Source of the DNA: Paramoeba atlantica
Taxonomy: Eukaryota > Protista > Discosea
Assembly (NCBI GenBank): GCA_977017575.1
Contig: CDRNVI010000138.1
Span: forward strand, 1-64,000
DNA length: 64,000 bases
Direction: 5' to 3'
Shown one piece after another: positions 2,534-13,301 of this stretch. Both the position numbers and the translations under genes were made by a program. Below the pieces are notes generated by a model, which was given only the letters and a program-made list of their open reading frames with translations, searched no databases and was not told the DNA's origin. The first letter of the stretch is position 1. Every line of letters begins with the position of its first letter.

Positions 2534-2739
2534 TGAAATGTTAGAAAAAAACACAGGAAGCCAACTACAGTCAAAAACAGACTGAATTCTTTTTGTGAAA
2601 TGTCAGGAGACACTGCAAATATGAAATTTTTTTGATGATGTTGGCTTCTGAGATTCAGAAAAGATTGAAAAATAAACCCCATTGTTAATCTCTATTTTTA
2701 GAGAAAAAAGGTTGTTGTTCCTTTTTTCTTTTTCACTTT

Positions 2740-4476
2740 ACAAAAATTGTCTTGGTGGTTTGGAACAAACACACTTGGCATTGCCACACTCTTTTACCAC
2801 TGGTAGTTTAGGTTAATTTCTCCACAGTCCTTGGACTGAGGTGAAAAAGTGACCAAAAAAGATTTATACATTAGTACTTTGTTATAAACTTTTCCCTACT
2901 GGCTAGCCAGAGCTTATGCAAGTCTGTGAGAGTCAAGAGTGTTGCAAAGGGGAACCAACAAACAAACAAACAACCCAACAACAAAAAACAACTAAACTCC
3001 TTGTAGATCCACCTTTGAAGCTGTGAAGGTGGTGTGAAGAGGAAAGATGAACAACCACACAGTAGGTTTTTTATTAAGAATTTTTTGAACACTTTTCAGG
3101 AAAAATCTCAAATCTTAAATTAAAAAAAAACAGAAATATTGAGAAACTGAGGAAAACTGGGACAACAAGAAGGGAGGAGGAGAAGGGAAGGCCTCCTTTG
3201 CACCAGAAGCTTTGCATCAGTGTGTATTGTTGTTGAGATCAACATTCTACTAGCAGGTATGTACCCAGCAGTTTGAATGGAAGGATGGAAGAAATAAATT
3301 ACTAAAAATTATTGCAGAGCTCTTAGGAGGAGGGCAGGACTCACAACACTCTCACAACATTCAGAGAGGAGGAGAACACAACCACTACCACCATGGATGA
3401 TGCTGAACAGGTTGGGGATTGCTTTACTAAGTTATTTGGCAAGAAAAAAAAAAAAATGTACACTTTTCTTACAAACCCCCTTTTGCACAGAAAAATATAG
3501 AACTTTTTTGTAAAATACTTTGCCATAAATTTTACGAATTTACTTTGATAGAAGAACCTTTTACTCACCAAAAGATGCTTGATTTCTGTCTTGAAAGTGA
3601 ACCAGAACTGAGGCTTGTTGAAAACAAAAGAGCTGGGTCAATTGGGAGGCACATTGCCAAAGCAGTTGATCAGTTGTTCTCAAGTTCACAGAGAAAATCA
3701 AAAAATGGGAAATATCACTCTATTTGATTTTTGTAAAGGAAGAAACAAAACCTTATTTAAATTTTAAAGATTTCATTTTGAAAATAATTAAGAAGAAGTG
3801 TGAGAAAATGCAAATAGCTTACAATGGTGGTGGTGGTGGTTCTAAGGAGGAGGAGAGTGGAGTAACGATGGAGTGGATGGTTGATCAAGTTATGTAAGAT
3901 TATTTTGCTAAGTTACCAGTCTGTTTTGATGGAACCCCTAAGAAAAATCGCTTGAGAGGACAACTCAAAGAAATTATTGCCTTGAGATTAAGAGAGAAAG
4001 GGATAAAAAAAAACAAACAATGTGGTGGATATTGGTTATTGAGGTGGATTTCAGAGAGAGATATTCTCGAAAGAGTTGAGGAGAGGAGGGAGGAGCAAAC
4101 ACAAGAAGTAGGTTTGACCATGAGCTTCAACAAGGAATAGGTTTTTTGTTTTTTTTTGTTTTGAAGAAAGGAAGGAAGAGAGAGAGGGGAGGGAGGAGGT
4201 TGCAAGAAAAGAAAGGAAAGAAAAGGAAAGAAAACAAAAACTATAAAACAAGAATGAGAAAACTTGGTGGTGAGAGATGGTGGGGGGAGGTGATTAAGAG
4301 AAGGTGATAAAAAATTAAAAACCTTTAAACAAAACTAATGACTTTTTTTTGTGTACAGAGGAGTCCAAAAACTGTACTGTCCAGACAAAACTTGTTATGA
4401 ATTAAAAAAGAACAGGTGGTCCACATTTTTTGAATCCCCTAGAAAAGAAATGCAAGATGACTTCCAATTCCTCCAA
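2740..4476 (+). pseudogene. Decayed spliced coding remnants in the 5' part of the transposon (unknown protein, two weakly winged-helix-like segments)
   Basis: Plus-strand frames read as protein but are broken by TAG/TGA/TAA. Intron-like gaps at about 3062-3131, 4140-4359 and 4477-4595. Segments RAGSIGRHIAKAVDQLF..KNGKYHSI and RLREKGIKKNKQCGGYW. Confidence 0.4.
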
Positions 4477-4584
4477 GTAAGTGTAAAAACAAATTTTATT
4501 TTTGTAAAAAAAATTATAATAATTATAATAATAATAATAACAAGTTTTGATTTTGTAATTTAAGATTCTTTTTTTTAATATTTT

Positions 4585-7500
4585 ATGGTGTTTAGGATTT
4601 CTTTTCAAAACTTGGCTCACAATTGGCTTCAAATTGGAACAAAACAAATTCTCACACAGAAACATTATGAAGTTTTTCATCATGATGATGGTGAATCATC
4701 CACCTCTGTAACCACAGCAGCAGCAGCAGCAGCAGCAGGTTGCACTCCTCCACCTCCATCTTTCCCCTCTCTATTCCCTCCTTCACTTGAACAGAGGAAA
4801 AGCCACCACTCATCCTCATCACCATCATCATTGCCACCACTTCTCTCTAATGTTTTGCCAAAACCTCGAAAACTTTCAGATGGAACTCTTGGCTTGGATG
4901 ATAAAAAAAGAAAGAAATTGATTCTTTCCCTCTTACCTTTGTTTGGTGGACAATTTGTTGGGAAGATTGATGATATTGCATCAGAATGCGTTTCGAACAG
5001 CTCTTCCTTTGATACTGGTCCTGGGATCCTTCGAATTCACAACAGAACGAATGATATTGGAGGGTTTCTTTCACTTGAAAATGTGTCTTGTGTTTTGTCT
5101 TTTAATTCGAATGCAATTGCTCAAACATTGGTTGTTGATCCAAAGTTACATGTGGAATTATGTAATTTATATAAACACTCTTGAAATCTTGTTAAGATTG
5201 ACCATCTTCCTCACCTTTGTGTGGAGTTTTATATTCAAACAATAGATATGTCCACACATCTTGATGAGAAGGAAGTCAAAACAATTGTGGTGATTGATCT
5301 TGGTAATTGTGGTGGATTGGAATATTGGTGGGGTGTGAAAGTGAAAATGAAACCTGAAGATCAGCAGCAGTTTACCTCTGAGAAGATTGAAGAATCTTAT
5401 ATTTGGGAGAAAGCAAATGAGAGTCAGTTTGTGCATCAAGGATTTGTAGAATCATTGCTGAGGAAGGGAAGAGCAATTCTGATATTTCGAGAATACTTGA
5501 AAGGTTTGGTGGAGGAAGGTCGATGGGAGAGAAAGTTGCATCCTTTGGTTGTGAATTGTCTCTATGCAAATGTTCTCTTTTCACAAGCTGTTCAGAACAA
5601 TCTTGCAAAGCAGGATCTTTCACAACAAACATTGAAAGAAAAACCACTTTTGGGAATTTTAGAAGCTCTTTTTCATTTTGTCAACAACACTGTTGTCTTG
5701 AAAGCTGGAGGGTATTCAGATTTGTGGTCTTGTTTTGGGCATGCTCCTTCTAAAGACTTTGTGTTTGGGTTTCTCCCTGAGAAGTTCATTCCACTGAATT
5801 TCTCCAAGGAGGTGAAGCTTAATTTTCCTCTCCCCTCTCAGTTTATGATTCAATGTGGCCTTCCTGGTATTTTATGGTTTGGTGGTTTCCACATAACTAT
5901 AAGGCAGTCAATCTATGCAACCCAAGAGGATGGCCTCATTTCAGTGAAGATCACCTGTGTTGACTCAACTGTGTCTCTCAAATGTCCAATGTTCTCTCAA
6001 AAAAAAAGTTTCAAGGGTGATGTTCAACTTTCTTCTGTTTCTTCTTTTTCTTTTTCTTCTTGTTCTCCAAATGCTTTCTCAAATTTTGCTTCTGAGAATG
6101 GGTGTTGTTTTTTTATTCAGGTCAACAAAATACAACCTTCTTGTTTTGAGAAGAAAAAATCTGTGAATCATAGGCAGTTTTTGTACTTTTTAAATCAGTC
6201 TTCCTTTGCTTGTGATGTATTCAAAATTGTTTGTTTTTGTTTCTTGAAACCATTTTTGATCTTGCAAACCTCCAAATGTCACCTTTCAAGGACGGATGGT
6301 GAATCAGCTGGTTCATTTTGTAGTACAATTATGAATGACCAGGATTTGATCAAATCCCTCCAAAATTCAAGTATGTTTTCAAGAGGAGTTGTTTACAGAA
6401 AATACAATATGAGCAGCCAAGAGCAGACAATAGGTCATGTGTTGGATAATGGTTCAAAGTCATTGAGGTTTCAATTTTTCCATGATGCTGCAACAAGTGA
6501 TGGTTGTAGTAGGTTAATTACCAATCGAAAGAATAACCTTTATAGTGACTATGATTCTGCATTGAAATTCTTGAAAAGGGGTGTCCAACCACCCAAGTCA
6601 GGTTTATTTTTATTTTCTTTTTTTCTTTTTTTTCTTTTTTTTCTTTTTTTTTTTTTTCTTTTTTTTCTTTTTTTTCTTTTTTTTCTTTTTTTTCTTTTTT
6701 TTCTTTTTTTTCTTTTTTTCAAAAAGATTTTGAATTTTAAAAGTTTTTGTTTCTAGAAAAAAATGAAAGAAATATCTTTCTCACTGTTGGCTTGCCCTTT
6801 TCTCCTCATTATCAAGATTTGAAAAAGGTTGTTAAGCAACAAAAACGATTAATTCAAACCCTCGAAGATCAGGTCAAAATGTTGACTCAAAAGTACAATT
6901 ATTTGGCTAGGAATGAATCTTCTCTTCAATCTTCTGTTGTTCTTCAATCACAAAATGAGGATGAGTATCTCCTTGAGTTGGTGAAACAAGCAAATGAAAA
7001 ATACAGCAAGAGTTGGTATCAATCATTTCATTACACCTTCATTGTGCAACAAATGGAGGTATTGACAGCATCTGATGGTCGATCAATACAATAGAACTCT
7101 GATGTTCTCCACTTTTTCTCTTCCATCTTATTTGTTGGTGGGAAGAAGACAATCCAAACTCTGATAGGAGAAGGTTTCCAAGGGCAAGGAAATAAAGGCA
7201 GTTGTTTGTGAATTGATCCCTCGAAATTCAATCTCTTTGTTCCTTCTCTAACCAAGATGAAAGAGTTTCTTCCTCCAATTGATCCTTACTCTCAAGAGAA
7301 TCTTCCACTGAAATGTGAAGTGATTCGAAAAATGTTTGTGCAACGAAAAGAGAATGGGAATTGGAAATATGAAAAATTTCTTGGAGGTCTGGTTTCTGAT
7401 GAAATTGAAATTCAATCAGGGTTGGTGTATCTCTGTTTTTCAAATCGGTTGATTAGTTGTGCTTCTCAAATCTTGTGGATTTCTTCTCTCAGACAAAATG

Positions 7501-7960
7501 ATAGTACTAATTTGGTTGTGAATGATTTGGCAAAGAAAGTGAACCACTTCTTTTTTATCTTGAATTGTAGGACTATTTGTGTTGAACTGGCCTACTACCC
7601 AATGGTGGGCCTTTCTGGAGATGAGTTGTTTCAGCAAGTGGAAAAACTTGAAGGTGCTCTTAAGAAGCAAGCTATTATTGTTACATGAACATCAACAGAT
7701 GGTTTCAAGGGTTCGGGCAAGTATTTGTCCAAAATTAAAAAAAAATCCATTCTCCACATCTTTGATTACATGCATTTGGCAAAATTAGGGAGAAACCAAC
7801 TCTTGAACAAGTGCCTTGACTTTCCTTGTGGTTTATTTCGTGAATTGTCTGCTGAAGAAGAAAGTTCGAACACATCACTGCCCTCCTCACCTCCCTCAAA
7901 ACAAAGAAAGATGACAGTTGATGATGGTGGTGATGTTATTGGGGAAGAAGATGAGGTTAT
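4585..7960 (+). pseudogene. Long N-terminal region plus N-terminal half of a P-type DDE transposase (truncated, premature stops)
   Basis: ORFs 4585 and 5221 share a frame across TGA 5182. Intron 6602-6756 joins them in frame to ORF 6747. ORFs 6747, 7257 and 7725 share a frame across TAG 7092, TGA 7209 and TGA 7686. Motifs LVSDEIEIQSGLVY, LAKKVNHFFF, VELAYY, IVT*TSTDG and HIFDYMHLAKLGRN follow the P-transposase RNase H order. Confidence 0.8.
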
Positions 7961-9127
7961 CTCACCAACCACTTTGGGGGGGATGTTTTATCCCATCAAT
8001 AATGATCGTCAACAAAAGTTCATGGGATTTCTGGCTCTACAGTTCTTGAGAGGAAACCTTCATCATAGAAAATGGTTTATCCAAACTGGGAAAAGTTTCT
8101 CCGAAAGTTAATTCTGAATGGAGGGAAAGTCTTGTCCCTTGCCCACAATAGTCAGACTTGTGATGAAAATGCTTTGAGGTGTAACATGTCATGATTGACA
8201 CAAGAACATAATTTCCTCAACTCATCTGTTGTATTTGGGGATATCAAGTGGCTTGTCAAAGCAAAACATCCAAGTGATAAGCTCTGGTCTGTGTCACATC
8301 TCTGTGGTGTCTTTGGAATTGATTACACTGGAGACAAAATTCCTGTTTCCCAGCTATCAAATAGTGGTCACCAACTCTGAAATACACAGACCTTTTATCA
8401 CAACGCATTGACAGATTCAAAGATGCAACTCCAAATTTTGCAAAAACTTCTTTCAGAGCCACCGAAAGAATCACTTTCCACTTCATCATCATCTCAACCT
8501 TTGTCTTCATCCTCCTCACCTTCATCATCCTTGCCTTCATCCTTGTCTTTGCCATCTTCCTTGCTGCCTCATTCCTCGTCATCTTTGTCTTCATCCTCCT
8601 CACCTTCATCATCTTTGCCTTCATCATCATCATCTCTGTCTTCATCCTCCTTGCCTTCATCATCATCTTTGCCTTCATCATCCTCCTTGTCTTCATCCTC
8701 CTCACATTCATCCTCCTCACATTCATCCACACCTTTGTCCTTACTGTCCTTGCCTTTATCCTCCTCACCTTTGTCATTATCCTCACTGTTGCCTTCGGTG
8801 CCCTTGCCTTCAGCATCCTCCTTGTCTTCATCTCACATTTCCTCAGCTTTTTCCAAGTCCCTCTGCAAATTTTTTCAAAAGTATTTTGAGAATGCATTGC
8901 TTTCATCATGAAAAAAAGTCTCAAAAAAACAAGACAATCCAAGAGAATCAATGGTGGTGAAGAAAAACAGCCGGGGGAAAGGGGGAGGTGGGGGAGGACA
9001 AGGAAGAGGAAGAGGGCTAGGAAGAGGAAGAGGAAGAGGAAGAGGAAAAGGAAAAGGGGATTCAGGAGAGAATCCTGAAACAGCTGGAAGTAAAAGAAAA
9101 AGGTGAGGAGGCAAAATAAATTCTTGA
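7960..9127 (+). pseudogene. DEDDh-type 3'-5' exonuclease domain followed by Ser-rich and Gly/Arg-rich tail (premature stops)
   Basis: After a frameshift near 8000 the frame reads KVHGISGSTV..WEKFL..VLSLAHNSQTCD (ExoII-like, 8141-8164), SVSHLCGVFGI and HNALTD (ExoIII-like, 8399-8416). It stays in frame through TGA 8192, 8378, 8909 and 9104 to TGA 9125-9127. ExoI was not found. Confidence 0.7.
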
Positions 9128-9275
9128 TTTTTTGACTTCATTTTTTTTTTGTCATCCCAAAAAAATGACATTTCAAAAAAAGAGGGTGTCCTGTTTAGAG
9201 GTCTTTTTGCAGGTAGTTGGCTTCCTGCGGAAAAAAAAAAGCAAAAAAAAAACAAAAAAAAGGCAAAAAAAAATT

Positions 9276-9541
9276 CGTCGGAAGCAGGATTTGAACCTAC
9301 GCCCCGTTTCCAGGATGTGATTTCTAGTCACAAAAAAAAGAACGAAAACAACCAATTTGGGGTATCAATAATTTGGCTAAATTTAGCCAAATATCTAAAA
9401 GTTCGCCAATTACGGTGACGTCACTGAAATTGGCGAACTTTTAGATATCTGGCTAAATTTAGCGACGATTTTACATCGATTTTTTTCTTCAATTTCACTC
9501 ATCAAGAAAAAGTACGTCTTAGACCACTCGACCATTCCGAC
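9276..9541 (-). tRNA. tRNA-Ser(AGA): tRNA-Ser(AGA) interrupted by a 182-bp insertion between D-arm and anticodon stem
   Basis: 5' part 9541-9515 is GTCGGAA TG GTC GAGTGGTCTAA GAC G. 3' part 9332-9276 is TGTGA CT AGA AA TCACA TCCTG GAAA CGGGG C GTAGG TTCAAAT CCTGC TTCCGAC G. Joined they give an 84-nt cloverleaf with all stems paired, a long variable arm, G73 and a downstream T-run. Confidence 0.92.
9376..9463. repeat. 88-bp near-perfect palindrome (3 mismatched pairs) inside the tRNA insertion
   Basis: GCTAAATTTAGCCAAATATCTAAAAGTTCGCCAATT-ACG-GTGACGTCAC-TGA-AATTGGCGAACTTTTAGATATCTGGCTAAATTTAGC. A nested perfect 22-bp palindrome ATTTGGCTAAATTTAGCCAAAT lies at 9371-9392. Confidence 0.97.
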
Positions 9542-9587
9542 TTCTCTTGTGTTTGTTCGTTTTTCTTGGTTTCTTAAGAAAGAAAAT

Positions 9588-11220
9588 GAGGGTTTCTAAA
9601 ACTCCTGAAAAAACCAGTTTTTTTGTTTGATGTTTTTTTTTCACAAAACTCTGGGCCCAGAATTTTTGCTGAGGGTGAAAACCCAGAGTTTTTTCATTTT
9701 GAAAAAAAAATTCAAAATTTTGAAAATGAGATTGAAATGGAAAATTGAAAGTTTATTTCAAACAAAAAAAAGAGAAAAATGGAAATGAAGAGGTTGCTGA
9801 AATTGAATTGGAGGGAGGTTTATGGTGGAATAATCTTTTGTGTTATCAACTCCACAAATATCTTCCTTCTAAGAATGGTGCATGTTTTAAACAAAAACTT
9901 TTGAGTGGAATCTCAAAGGCAAACAATAGCAAAAAGCTAATAAAAAAATTCCACACTCAGTTGCATTTTGCTGCTCATTCATAAGATGGAAAGAAAACAT
10001 TCAAAGAAATGTAAAAACCTCTTGGCTGGGACATATTACCTCTTGATTGGACATATTACCTCTTGGCTGGGACATATTACCTCAACACAGGTTGCCTTCT
10101 CCAGTTTCTTCCATTTTGAGGACATCTTTTTGATTTTCTAAAAAGGTGTTTCAGTTTGAAAAGAAAGGAAAAGAGAGAAAGGGAGAGAGAGGGGAGAAAT
10201 TGAAAAAAAAGAAACCTCAAAAGCAGAAACTTCACAACCCCCAAGAGAGTCATAAAATAACAATTCATTCAACTAAAAACAAAAAAAAAACAAACCAACC
10301 AGGAAAAAAAAAAGAAGAAAACCAAGAAGGGAACGTGAACGTGAACAGAAAAAGCAAAAAAAAAACGAGGCTCTGTCACATAAAAATATTATGATTTTTT
10401 TCTTGCTGTCTTTCTTTCAAAAGAAAAAAATGAAAAGACTTGGTACCTTACTTTGGTGAGGAGCGCGTTCTTTTTCGTTTTTTCTGTTCGGTTCTGTTCT
10501 TTCGGTTTTTGTTTTGTTTTTGTTTGTTTGTTCTTTTGTTTGATTGTTTTTTTTTTGGTTTCTCTTTTGTTTTGTTTTTGTTTGTGTGTTTGCTTTTGTT
10601 TGTGTGTTTGCTTTTGTTTGTTTGTTCTTTTGTTTAATTTTTTTTTTTGCTTTCTCTTTTGTTTTGTTTTTGTTTGTGTGTTTTTCTTTTGTTTGTGTGT
10701 GTTTGCTTTTGTGTTTTTTTGTTTTATTTTTTGTTTTGTTTTTTGTTTTTGCTTTGTGTTTGAAAGGATGATTGCCAGACAGTGAATTTGAGGATTGATT
10801 GAGATGTTTTTGGGGTTGGTGCACACTTTTCAGGCAACCACTGTCTCTTTTTCTTCAAGTGCGGATGCAAACTATTGTTCTGTTAATTGTTTATTCTCTG
10901 ATGAACCATAGAATCCAACTTTCTCCTCTTTGTCCTCTTCTAAACAAGATTCTATCACCTTTTCCCATTTGTTCTGCAGAAGAAAATGATGGTTATGAAG
11001 ATCTCTCAAGTGACATTCATCAATTCAAAATTTTGAATTCTCTTCATCTTTATTTTTGTTTTTTTAGTCAAAATAAAAAATTTATTTTTTTTGAAATTAT
11101 TTGAATTTTTTTTTAAAATAAAAAAACTCTGGGTTTTCACCCTCAGCAAAAATTCTGGGCCCAGAGTTTTGTGAAAAAAAAAAAAAAAATCGCGTTGATT
11201 CCTCCCTTTTAGAAACCCTC
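9588..11220. mobile_element. Non-autonomous TIR DNA transposon, 1.63 kb, in an AAATTT target (ISL2EU/Spy-like signature)
   Basis: 14-bp perfect terminal IR GAGGGTTTCTAAAA (9588-9601 and 11207-11220), plus a 62-bp perfect subterminal IR (9633-9694 and 11121-11182). Flanks AAAT| and |ATTT reconstruct an empty site AAATTT. No intact transposase inside. Confidence 0.82.
10018..10083. repeat. Three tandem 20-21 bp direct repeats CCTCTTG(GCTG/ATT)GGACATATTA
   Basis: Units at 10018-10038, 10039-10058 and 10059-10079, plus a partial CCTC. Confidence 0.95.
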
Positions 11221-11376
11221 ATTTAGCGCCATAAAATTTTCCCCCAACCGTTTCTCTGTGTTTTCTCTTCGGACACATCTCTTCTCATCCTTTCTTCCTT
11301 TTCTCTCTCGAAAGTGTTCCAAAGAACTGAATTTTTGATTCAGTTTTTTGGTTGTCGCTCTGGGTTGTGTGGTTGG

Positions 11377-13301
11377 ATGTGGTTGGCATTGTTCGTTTGG
11401 TGTTGTTGTTTTCTTGTCTTTCCTTCTTCTTGCGATGAGGGAGGAGATTGTTTTCCTTACAGTCTTCAAAATGAATGTACAAGCGTGTTGTTTGGAAAGA
11501 ATGTCTCAATTGAAGAGGGAGAACAGAGTGACTTCTTTTACCAAAATGTCTCGTTGATTGTTTCTGATATTCGAATGGTCCAAGAAAGTTGTCGAAGACC
11601 CTATTTGTCTTATTATTGCCAACTCCTCTTTGGTTCTTTTTCGTGCGAGTCTTCATCTTTTGAAGAAGAAGAGTGTTTGCAAGAAGAGTATTGTATTCAA
11701 GTTGCTGATGCTTGTGCAAATGATTTTAAATTTGATTGTCCTCAGTCCTCAACTCCACCAACAAATAATGATTGCAAAGACCAAGTAAGCAAAGAAATCA
11801 ATGAAGTGAAAAAGAAACCAATTGCAGTCCAAACATGTTTCGACAGTTCAAAAGAACCAATTGAATGTTGTATTGATCCGTTTATCGATGATGATCATGA
11901 TGAATGTGTTGTTCAATGTTTTCAATATCTTTATGGAGAAACATGGGAGAATTCTGTTCGAATTTTTTGCTTTATTCTCTCTTGGCTCTCTTTGTTGCTG
12001 TGGGCAAGTTCTGTCATCCCTCTTTATATGGTGACTGATTTAAGGTTTTTATTTCTTTATTTCAGTCATTTTTTCTCAAATTGAAAATTCTGTCAATTTT
12101 CTTTTGTGTATTCATTTCTTCTTTATGAAGTTACCCAAACAACATCGTGTTCCTTTCGATTTTGAATTTTACTTTGTCATATTTGATGCTCAATTGGTCT
12201 ACTTTTGTTGGTTGGTTTTCTCTTTTTTAGTTTCCTCTTTTTTTTTGTGATTTTTGGATTGATTTTTTTGGGGCAGGTGGAGCCGATTCTTTTGTTTGTG
12301 ATGGGAAGAAGAATTTCTGGAAAGCAAGAAATGACTTTGTACTTTCAACACGATCTGTTTTTCAATATTCTCTTTGGGTCTGTACTATTCTGTCAGGGTT
12401 GTCTTTTTGGTGTGTTTTTTCTTTCAACTTGTTTTGTGCTTCGATGAGGTTTCCCTTATTTATTTATTAATTTATGAATCTTCTCCCCACAATATTTATT
12501 CTTTTTTTAAACAAAACTCAAATCTCTCTTCACTTTATAGACGACACACAACTTATTTTGAAAAGTTTATCAAACAACCAGCTCTCCCAGTGATACAATA
12601 TTCTTTTTTGGGAATATGTATTGGTTTGATGGTTGGATTGTTTTTTGGTTGTTTGATTTATGGTCTTGCCAAAAATGATTACCCACTTTCAAATTTAAAA
12701 ATTGTGCCGCTACCAATTTATTTTTTTCCTTCACAAGGAAAGAGTACTGTTTTAGCTGGTCTTTTTGTGTATCCAGCGTTGGTTTGTGGAGGTCTTGGTG
12801 GAATATTTAATTTTCTCTCCACTGTTCTGATTCTCCAGAGAGGAAGAGAAATTGTCTACTTTCAATGGTTTGTTTTTGTTTTTGTTTTTTCAAAAAAATA
12901 GTTCAATATTTGATAAAAGGAAATTAAATGAAAAATTATTCAGGAGATCAATTCTCTTTGGGATTTTTGGTGTGATTCTCTCCATCCTTCTTGACATTTA
13001 TATTTTTATTTTGTTGGCTGGGATATCAGATTCAAATATTATTCTGTTTATGGATTGTGTTGCTTCCCATCCTCAGGAAAACCCACCACCTTGTCAACGG
13101 GAGTACAGCAATGGATATGCTTTCATGATGTTTCACTTATTTACAAGTGCACTCCCTGGTTCTGCATGTTTAATATTTTATTGGACAAATTCATCAATTC
13201 TTATTTGGTGGAAAGAGTTTATTTTTTCGAAGAGAATATTGACTCAAAAATCAAATTATGAAGAAGTTGGTGAACGAATAGATTCACTCAATCAATTCTA
13301 G
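11377..13301 (+). CDS. Frizzled/Smoothened-like GPCR (signal peptide, Cys-rich domain, multi-TM), multi-exon
   Basis: Hydrophobic N-terminus, Cys-rich ectodomain (..CRRPYLSYYCQLLF..C..C..CADAC..FDC..), CCIDPF..CVVQC..YLY linker, several TM segments, a C..C final loop and a YWT...WWK C-terminus. Resembles Dictyostelium Fsl-type receptors. Confidence 0.75.

Follow-up and report, generated by a model that had tools for sequence, protein, structure and literature searches.

Probable disruption of one tRNA-Ser(AGA) gene copy by a unique palindromic insertion in Paramoeba atlantica

Within a 64,000-nt stretch of DNA from Paramoeba atlantica (assembly GCA_977017575.1, contig CDRNVI010000138.1, positions 1 to 64,000 of the forward strand; hereafter the window), a tRNA-Ser(AGA) gene is broken into two parts by 182 bp lying between the D arm and the anticodon stem. 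We think it very probable that this locus is an inactivated copy, that is an insertional pseudogene, of a multi-copy nuclear tRNA gene, and that the interruption arose as an insertion at the level of DNA. The feature is real, well defined and most likely ordinary in kind, a redundant gene copy disrupted by a unique palindromic insertion rather than a new type of intron or a split tRNA. The consequence for the organism would then be small, with one of about a dozen Ser(AGA) copies removed, and the case carries the caution that a perfect split cloverleaf is not by itself proof of a new intron type.

The broken gene and its intact relatives

When the minus-strand segments 9541-9514 and 9331-9276 are joined by script, they form a perfect 84-nt class II tRNA-Ser(AGA). 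In the ARAGORN model of this joined sequence all 7 bp of the acceptor stem are paired, the D stem has the 3 bp typical of class II, the variable arm is long and the T arm is regular, with no mismatch anywhere in the cloverleaf, so that the flawless structure reported in a preliminary description of this DNA is upheld. Everything that marks a nuclear class II tRNA-Ser is present in the joined parts (cloverleaf, long variable arm, anticodon AGA and discriminator G), and the Pol III signals of such a gene are likewise in place, with an A box, a B box and a downstream T-run terminator. It is in contiguity that the gene departs from its class: a tRNA-Ser gene is uninterrupted, or carries an intron at 37/38 alone, and this one holds 182 bp at linear position 27/28 or 28/29, corresponding to Sprinzl 26/27 or 27/28, with one T assignable to either side. 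The first base of the anticodon stem therefore sits at the break, and the earlier placement of the interruption between the D arm and the anticodon stem, away from 37/38, was correct. The native interrupted sequence gives no match from ARAGORN or from Rfam at gathering thresholds. With long introns allowed, ARAGORN did offer a tRNA-Lys(ttt) model with a 173-nt 'intron' on the native sequence, which is forced and false and was discarded. A sweep of ARAGORN over many junction registers accepted nearly all of them and is thus uninformative on the exact junction. The features of the locus are as follows.

upstream of the tRNA, minus strand: leader specific to the broken locus, …CACAAGAGAA (sequence)
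9514-9541, minus strand: 5' part of tRNA-Ser(AGA), nucleotides 1-28 (5' strand of the acceptor, D arm, G26 and T27, the last of them ambiguous), with no difference from the intact multi-copy genes
9524-9534, minus strand: A box, TGGTCGAGTGG (sequence)
9332-9513, minus strand: 182-bp insert, 32% G+C, 8 CpG, single-copy in reads, target duplication of at most 1 bp (sequence and contig comparison)
9507-9511, minus strand: T5 run, 2 nt past the 5' part (ACTTTTTC), a likely Pol III stop (sequence)
9376-9463, no strand assigned: palindrome of 88 bp, its 44-nt arms directly adjoining and mismatched at 3 pairs, centre GTGACGTCAC (sequence, folding)
9332-9339, minus strand: T8 run at the 3' end of the insert, of which one T is possibly tRNA nucleotide 27 (sequence)
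9276-9331, minus strand: 3' part of tRNA-Ser(AGA), nucleotides 29-84 (anticodon arm, long variable arm, T arm, acceptor 3' strand and discriminator G; ARAGORN)
9325-9323, minus strand: anticodon AGA (ARAGORN)
9287-9297, minus strand: B box, GGTTCAAATCC (sequence)
9265-9273, minus strand: T9 Pol III terminator, 2 nt past the gene (sequence)

The last of these belongs to four successive runs of T8-T10 on the tRNA sense strand (9232-9273), an unusually long stack of Pol III stops filling the space between the gene and the neighbouring transposon.

Five public runs of the organism contain this stretch of DNA, and contigs from four of them (X1, X3, X4 and X5, the last possibly RNA) were aligned to the unspliced reference; kept as contigs, these run data show the presence of sequence and not RNA ends. 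A joint from 9331 to 9514 that omits exactly 182 bases, with one base fitting either side, occurs in contigs of all four runs: two contigs in X1 (summed depth 1423, where the local single-copy depth is about 100), three in X3 (summed depth 2238), one in X4 (177) and one in X5 (5). On their short side these contigs match the locus over 28 letters, ending at the 5' end of the tRNA, and their loose ends beyond 9541 resemble neither the locus nor each other. Together, the short match and the differing flanks identify the joint contigs as intact tRNA-Ser(AGA) paralogues elsewhere in the genome. These paralogues omit precisely 9332-9513, which makes the earlier insert length exact to the base. No differing letters are listed within either tRNA part in the contig comparison, and the broken copy is therefore identical to the intact family. 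The preliminary description had raised the question of whether an uninterrupted Ser(AGA) gene exists; it does, identical over both halves and at about 11-13 times single-copy depth, or roughly a dozen copies' worth. We also observed in X1 a second Ser(AGA)-like family, with GTA in place of TGT at nucleotides 27-29 (a joint of 9329-9515 with TAC between), at about 2-3 copies' worth of depth, which probably has a compensated anticodon stem.

It had also been suggested that junction-spanning RNA would speak for splicing, and here the outcome was negative, as no junction evidence can be assigned to the broken locus. The single joint contig from the possibly-RNA run carries four mismatches and foreign flanks, which identify it as a paralogue and not as a spliced product of the interrupted gene. 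Where a eukaryote has many synonymous tRNA genes and one of them carries an insertion, the rule followed in the field is to regard that copy as a pseudogene (PMC4090602), and the present locus fits this rule.

The insert itself is no artefact of assembly, since independent contigs hold it and span its 5' junction. Three samples yielded contigs that cover insert sequence, identical or nearly so. One from X1 (9311-9536) contains the whole insert with no differences, and one from X4 (9426-9637), also without differences, crosses the 5' junction into the upstream flank. In X3 the insert differs at two sites (9354 A>G and 9425 T>C), from which it follows that the insertion predates about 1% of strain divergence. 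Bins across the insert (9351-9473) are covered by one contig per run at single-copy depth, and an organelle origin of the insert was rejected on the same reading of the depth. The X3 contig that bears the insert (9311-9507) has a depth of 49.6, compared with 110 and 207 for its neighbours in X3, while depths in X1 are even. The insertion may be heterozygous or polymorphic in the X3 sample; contigs end inside the multi-copy tRNA, and an empty allele at the insertion site would escape contig data of this kind.

The multi-copy region 9585-10100, just upstream of the tRNA gene, is covered at roughly 5-20 times the single-copy level. Its contigs part from one another at about 9585/9587, at 9679 and at 9709-9721, which suggests nested small repeats, and the X3 sequence past 9587 is unlike the window. 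Open reading frames at 10389-13301 gave no useful match to a Pfam family; one at 12852-13301 (plus strand) resembles the Frizzled/Smoothened membrane region weakly, below threshold (E = 0.005; 16.5 bits vs a cut-off of 22.3).

Transcription of the locus and RNA-level readings

Runs of T on the sense strand act as terminators for Pol III. Both of the runs to which the preliminary description drew attention are there: the T5 after the 5' part at the position given, and the run before the 3' part as a T8, which shrinks to the reported T7 if one T is counted as tRNA nucleotide 27. With a T5 two bases into the insert and a T8 at its end, general knowledge of Pol III leads us to expect that the polymerase should halt before the 3' part. 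The insert has widened the spacing of the A and B boxes by 182 bp; TFIIIC may still occupy both, and Pol III from its normal start would stop at the T5 or, at the latest, at the T8. Transcription would then yield no more than a 5' piece of some 30-35 nt or a hairpin-containing RNA of about 210 nt, and no mature tRNA would result. The broken locus is thus presumably neither expressed as a tRNA nor spliced.

The alternative first entertained was that the insert represents a new kind of tRNA intron, a genuine non-canonical one removed from the RNA by the splicing endonuclease or by another activity, as happens in Cyanidioschyzon merolae and in cryptophyte nucleomorphs. There are features of the locus which fit this: both tRNA halves are flawless, the minimum-energy structure keeps the cloverleaf, the D arm excepted, folded about the insert, and nucleomorph introns are spliced, often without a bulge-helix-bulge (BHB) motif (PMC3728597, PMC4090602). 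The eukaryotic tRNA endonuclease, however, finds 37/38 by a ruler mechanism (PMC4090602), and the confirmed eukaryotic exceptions to this site are nucleomorph inserts of 3-24 nt and BHB-type introns of C. merolae (PMC3728597, PMC4090602). At 182 nt the insert is longer than these nucleomorph inserts, and longer also than canonical eukaryotic introns, for which a range of 6-133 nt is given (PMC4090602). Nor could we find a BHB motif when all registers were scanned for two equivalent cut positions, in agreement with the earlier failure to identify one; the best register offers three of the four central pairs, a wobble among them, and its flanking helices measure 1 and 0 bp. The relaxed hBH and HBh' forms, as defined for C. 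merolae (PMC3728597), are likewise unmatched by the insert junctions. A scan of Rfam at E up to 10 gave no match to a ribozyme or tRNA family. A hammerhead look-alike at the start of the insert (CTTGATGAG..GAAA) was set aside, as the first base of its core is wrong, it has no stem II and it has no Rfam match. The T5 and T8 on the sense strand also stand against an intron, as does the occurrence of the insert in a single copy out of some dozen genes that are otherwise identical, and in the possibly-RNA run the insert is uncovered even though the neighbouring 9802-10100 is covered. Taking the intact paralogues, the missing BHB, the internal T5 and T8 and the want of a ribozyme match together, we regard an intron as very improbable and do not retain this part of the preliminary description.

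In a split tRNA of the Nanoarchaeum type the two halves are transcribed separately and carry complementary leader and trailer sequences. The locus might be functional in such a manner, with separately made halves, or it might serve as a Pol III unit, driven from the A and B boxes of the tRNA, whose product is either a fragment of the tRNA 5' part or a long RNA hairpin for small-RNA pathways. For the latter there is the near-perfect 44-bp hairpin, which resembles hairpin precursors: as RNA the palindrome is predicted to fold at -57.8 kcal/mol, and the whole 266-nt unit, in which the hairpin dominates, at -99.5 kcal/mol with a z-score of -9.4. The matches that Rfam did return at E up to 10 were exclusively sub-threshold ones to long-hairpin microRNA precursor families. 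These lie far below the gathering scores and are equal on both strands, the latter because the sequence is palindromic, as would occur with any palindrome. Moreover, the T5 run precedes the hairpin, and the feature is single-copy with no evidence of conservation. For a split tRNA, there is no apparent promoter for the 3' half, and the predicted fold contains no complementary pairing of leader and trailer. Considering also the intact paralogues, the earlier suggestion of a split tRNA is left unsupported, and a function of either sort seems to us hardly likely.

The insert and its possible origins

The 88-bp palindrome at the centre of the insert is a feature missed in the preliminary description. 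Its arms are 93% complementary, with 3 of 44 pairs mismatched, and the insert extends 44 and 50 nt beyond it on the two sides; these flanks are not inverted repeats of one another, and both ends of the insert are T-rich on the tRNA sense strand. The mismatches among the 44 pairs, set against no changes in the 84 tRNA bases, suggest that the palindrome predates the insertion, having formed and slightly decayed before it arrived at the tRNA gene.

A second property is the content of CpG. The tRNA and its insert had been described as retaining CpGs beside a transposon that has lost most of its own, and the observed/expected ratios bear this out, at 1.55 for the tRNA with the insert (9276-9541) compared with 0.14 for the neighbouring transposon (2552-9229); the insert alone (9332-9513) stands at 1.73 and the whole window at 0.57. 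At the rate of the window, the Poisson probability of at least 8 CpGs in the insert is 0.006, a value that owes something to mirror counting within the palindrome. One palindrome arm has already lost a CpG, as 9425 is T here and C in X3. In a CpG-depleted genome, random nuclear DNA would not account for a ratio of 1.73, and this is a point against an account in which the pseudogene arose by capture of such DNA. As to the transposon, its end occupies 9064-9226, where nearly all the differences of other X1 copies are C>T or G>A (24 of 30 listed changes across the aligned stretch), consistent with its own very low CpG ratio, and a purine microsatellite of GGAAGA/GAGGAA lies within the transposon end at 8980-9063.

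The structure of the insert ends bears on how it came to be there. The insert termini have no inverted repeats, and a single T is shared by the two junctions. Given the perfect joined gene, a target duplication of whatever length would be visible as bases common to both junctions, and the duplication is therefore at most 1 bp. This excludes the usual DDE superfamilies, and also a Dada element, for which duplications of 6-7 bp are the criterion (PMC3706591). The palindrome is internal to the insert, whose ends are not inverted, and there is neither a duplication nor a set of dispersed copies. MITEs and foldback elements, which have terminal inverted repeats flanked by a target duplication and form dispersed multi-copy families, were rejected on these grounds. 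Non-autonomous Helitrons insert between A and T and have 5'-TC and CTRR-3' ends; here the target (..GACG(T)GTGA..) contains no AT step, the ends are AC.. and ..TTTT, and this candidate was dropped as well.

The preliminary description had reasoned that an insert belonging to a common dispersed repeat would point to a simple insertional pseudogene. The insert is no such repeat, being single-copy at at least 88% identity in three runs. A second copy was not found in the 64-kb window, where low-complexity A/T matches were all that appeared. Viral, metagenome and prokaryote collections contained no match to a pattern of both inner palindrome arms; a single 21-nt arm gave one chance match in these scans, and it lacked the palindrome. 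The insert is thus without a detectable source or relative.

A very recent, tRNA-targeted insertion was also among the early proposals. The insertion stands; its recency has to be qualified in view of the strain divergence that it predates, and its targeting is at most a possibility. If it were targeted, the insert would derive from a site-specific mobile element directed to position 26-28 of tRNA-Ser, as a non-autonomous derivative or a repair scar, and the site would be specified by an enzyme and hit recurrently. The insert ends, AC followed by T5 at one side and T8 at the other, could indeed collapse to a 10-nt T-rich remnant consisting of AC and T8. The joints and loose ends listed, however, include no contig that carries a different insert here, whether of 10 nt or of another size, and the present insert is single-copy and without coding capacity, so we consider a targeted origin unlikely, if worth keeping in mind. 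Were the site found to be hit repeatedly in the genome, tRNA-Ser genes would seem to hold a fixed point that some nuclease or recombinase recognises. To our knowledge, targeting of a fixed spot in tRNA genes has so far been documented for few DNA elements, the Dada family being the example.

Within the pseudogene explanation, the origin we prefer, while giving it somewhat less than half of the weight, is a double-strand break repaired by end joining that would have captured a stray DNA fragment. Such a fragment would already have borne the slightly decayed palindrome. As an alternative to capture, one may consider an unclassified kind of mobile element whose insertion leaves the target unduplicated. 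For the genome as a whole, the unique CpG-rich palindrome may bear, in a small way, on how foreign or extrachromosomal DNA is captured.

Relation to known systems

The insertion sites of Dada elements are fixed points within tRNA and snRNA genes; the elements lack terminal inverted repeats, and internally deleted derivatives are found among them (PMC3706591). The present insert resembles them in lying in a tRNA gene and in the absence of terminal inverted repeats. Dada, however, is multi-copy and makes 6-7 bp duplications, whereas this insert is single-copy, with a duplication of at most 1 bp and no transposase relative in sight.

The ectopic BHB introns of C. merolae and the nucleomorph introns share with this locus a eukaryotic tRNA that is interrupted outside 37/38 and whose exons are perfect (PMC3728597, PMC4090602). 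For the nucleomorph introns, which measure 3-24 nt, excision has been confirmed by RT-PCR for at least some genes (PMC3728597, PMC4090602). The introns of C. merolae fold into BHB-type motifs, unlike the insert described here. The latter also differs from the nucleomorph introns in being 182 nt long, in holding Pol III stop signals and in occupying a redundant gene copy.

When breaks are repaired by end joining, captured or 'filler' DNA can be left behind, and fragments of organelle or extrachromosomal DNA are among its sources. The insert is like filler DNA in its 0-1 bp of junction microhomology, the lack of a target duplication and its unique sequence. It is unlike filler DNA in that no donor was found, and organelle DNA would have given a very high depth over the insert, which is not seen.

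Compared with other disrupted tRNA pseudogenes, the locus differs in that its halves are undecayed and in having a unique CpG-rich insert, with an 88-bp palindrome and no target duplication, that is no recognisable transposon. In other respects it is like the insertion-disrupted tRNA pseudogenes of eukaryotes, in which one of many synonymous copies is hit outside 37/38 while the rest stay intact and translation is unharmed.
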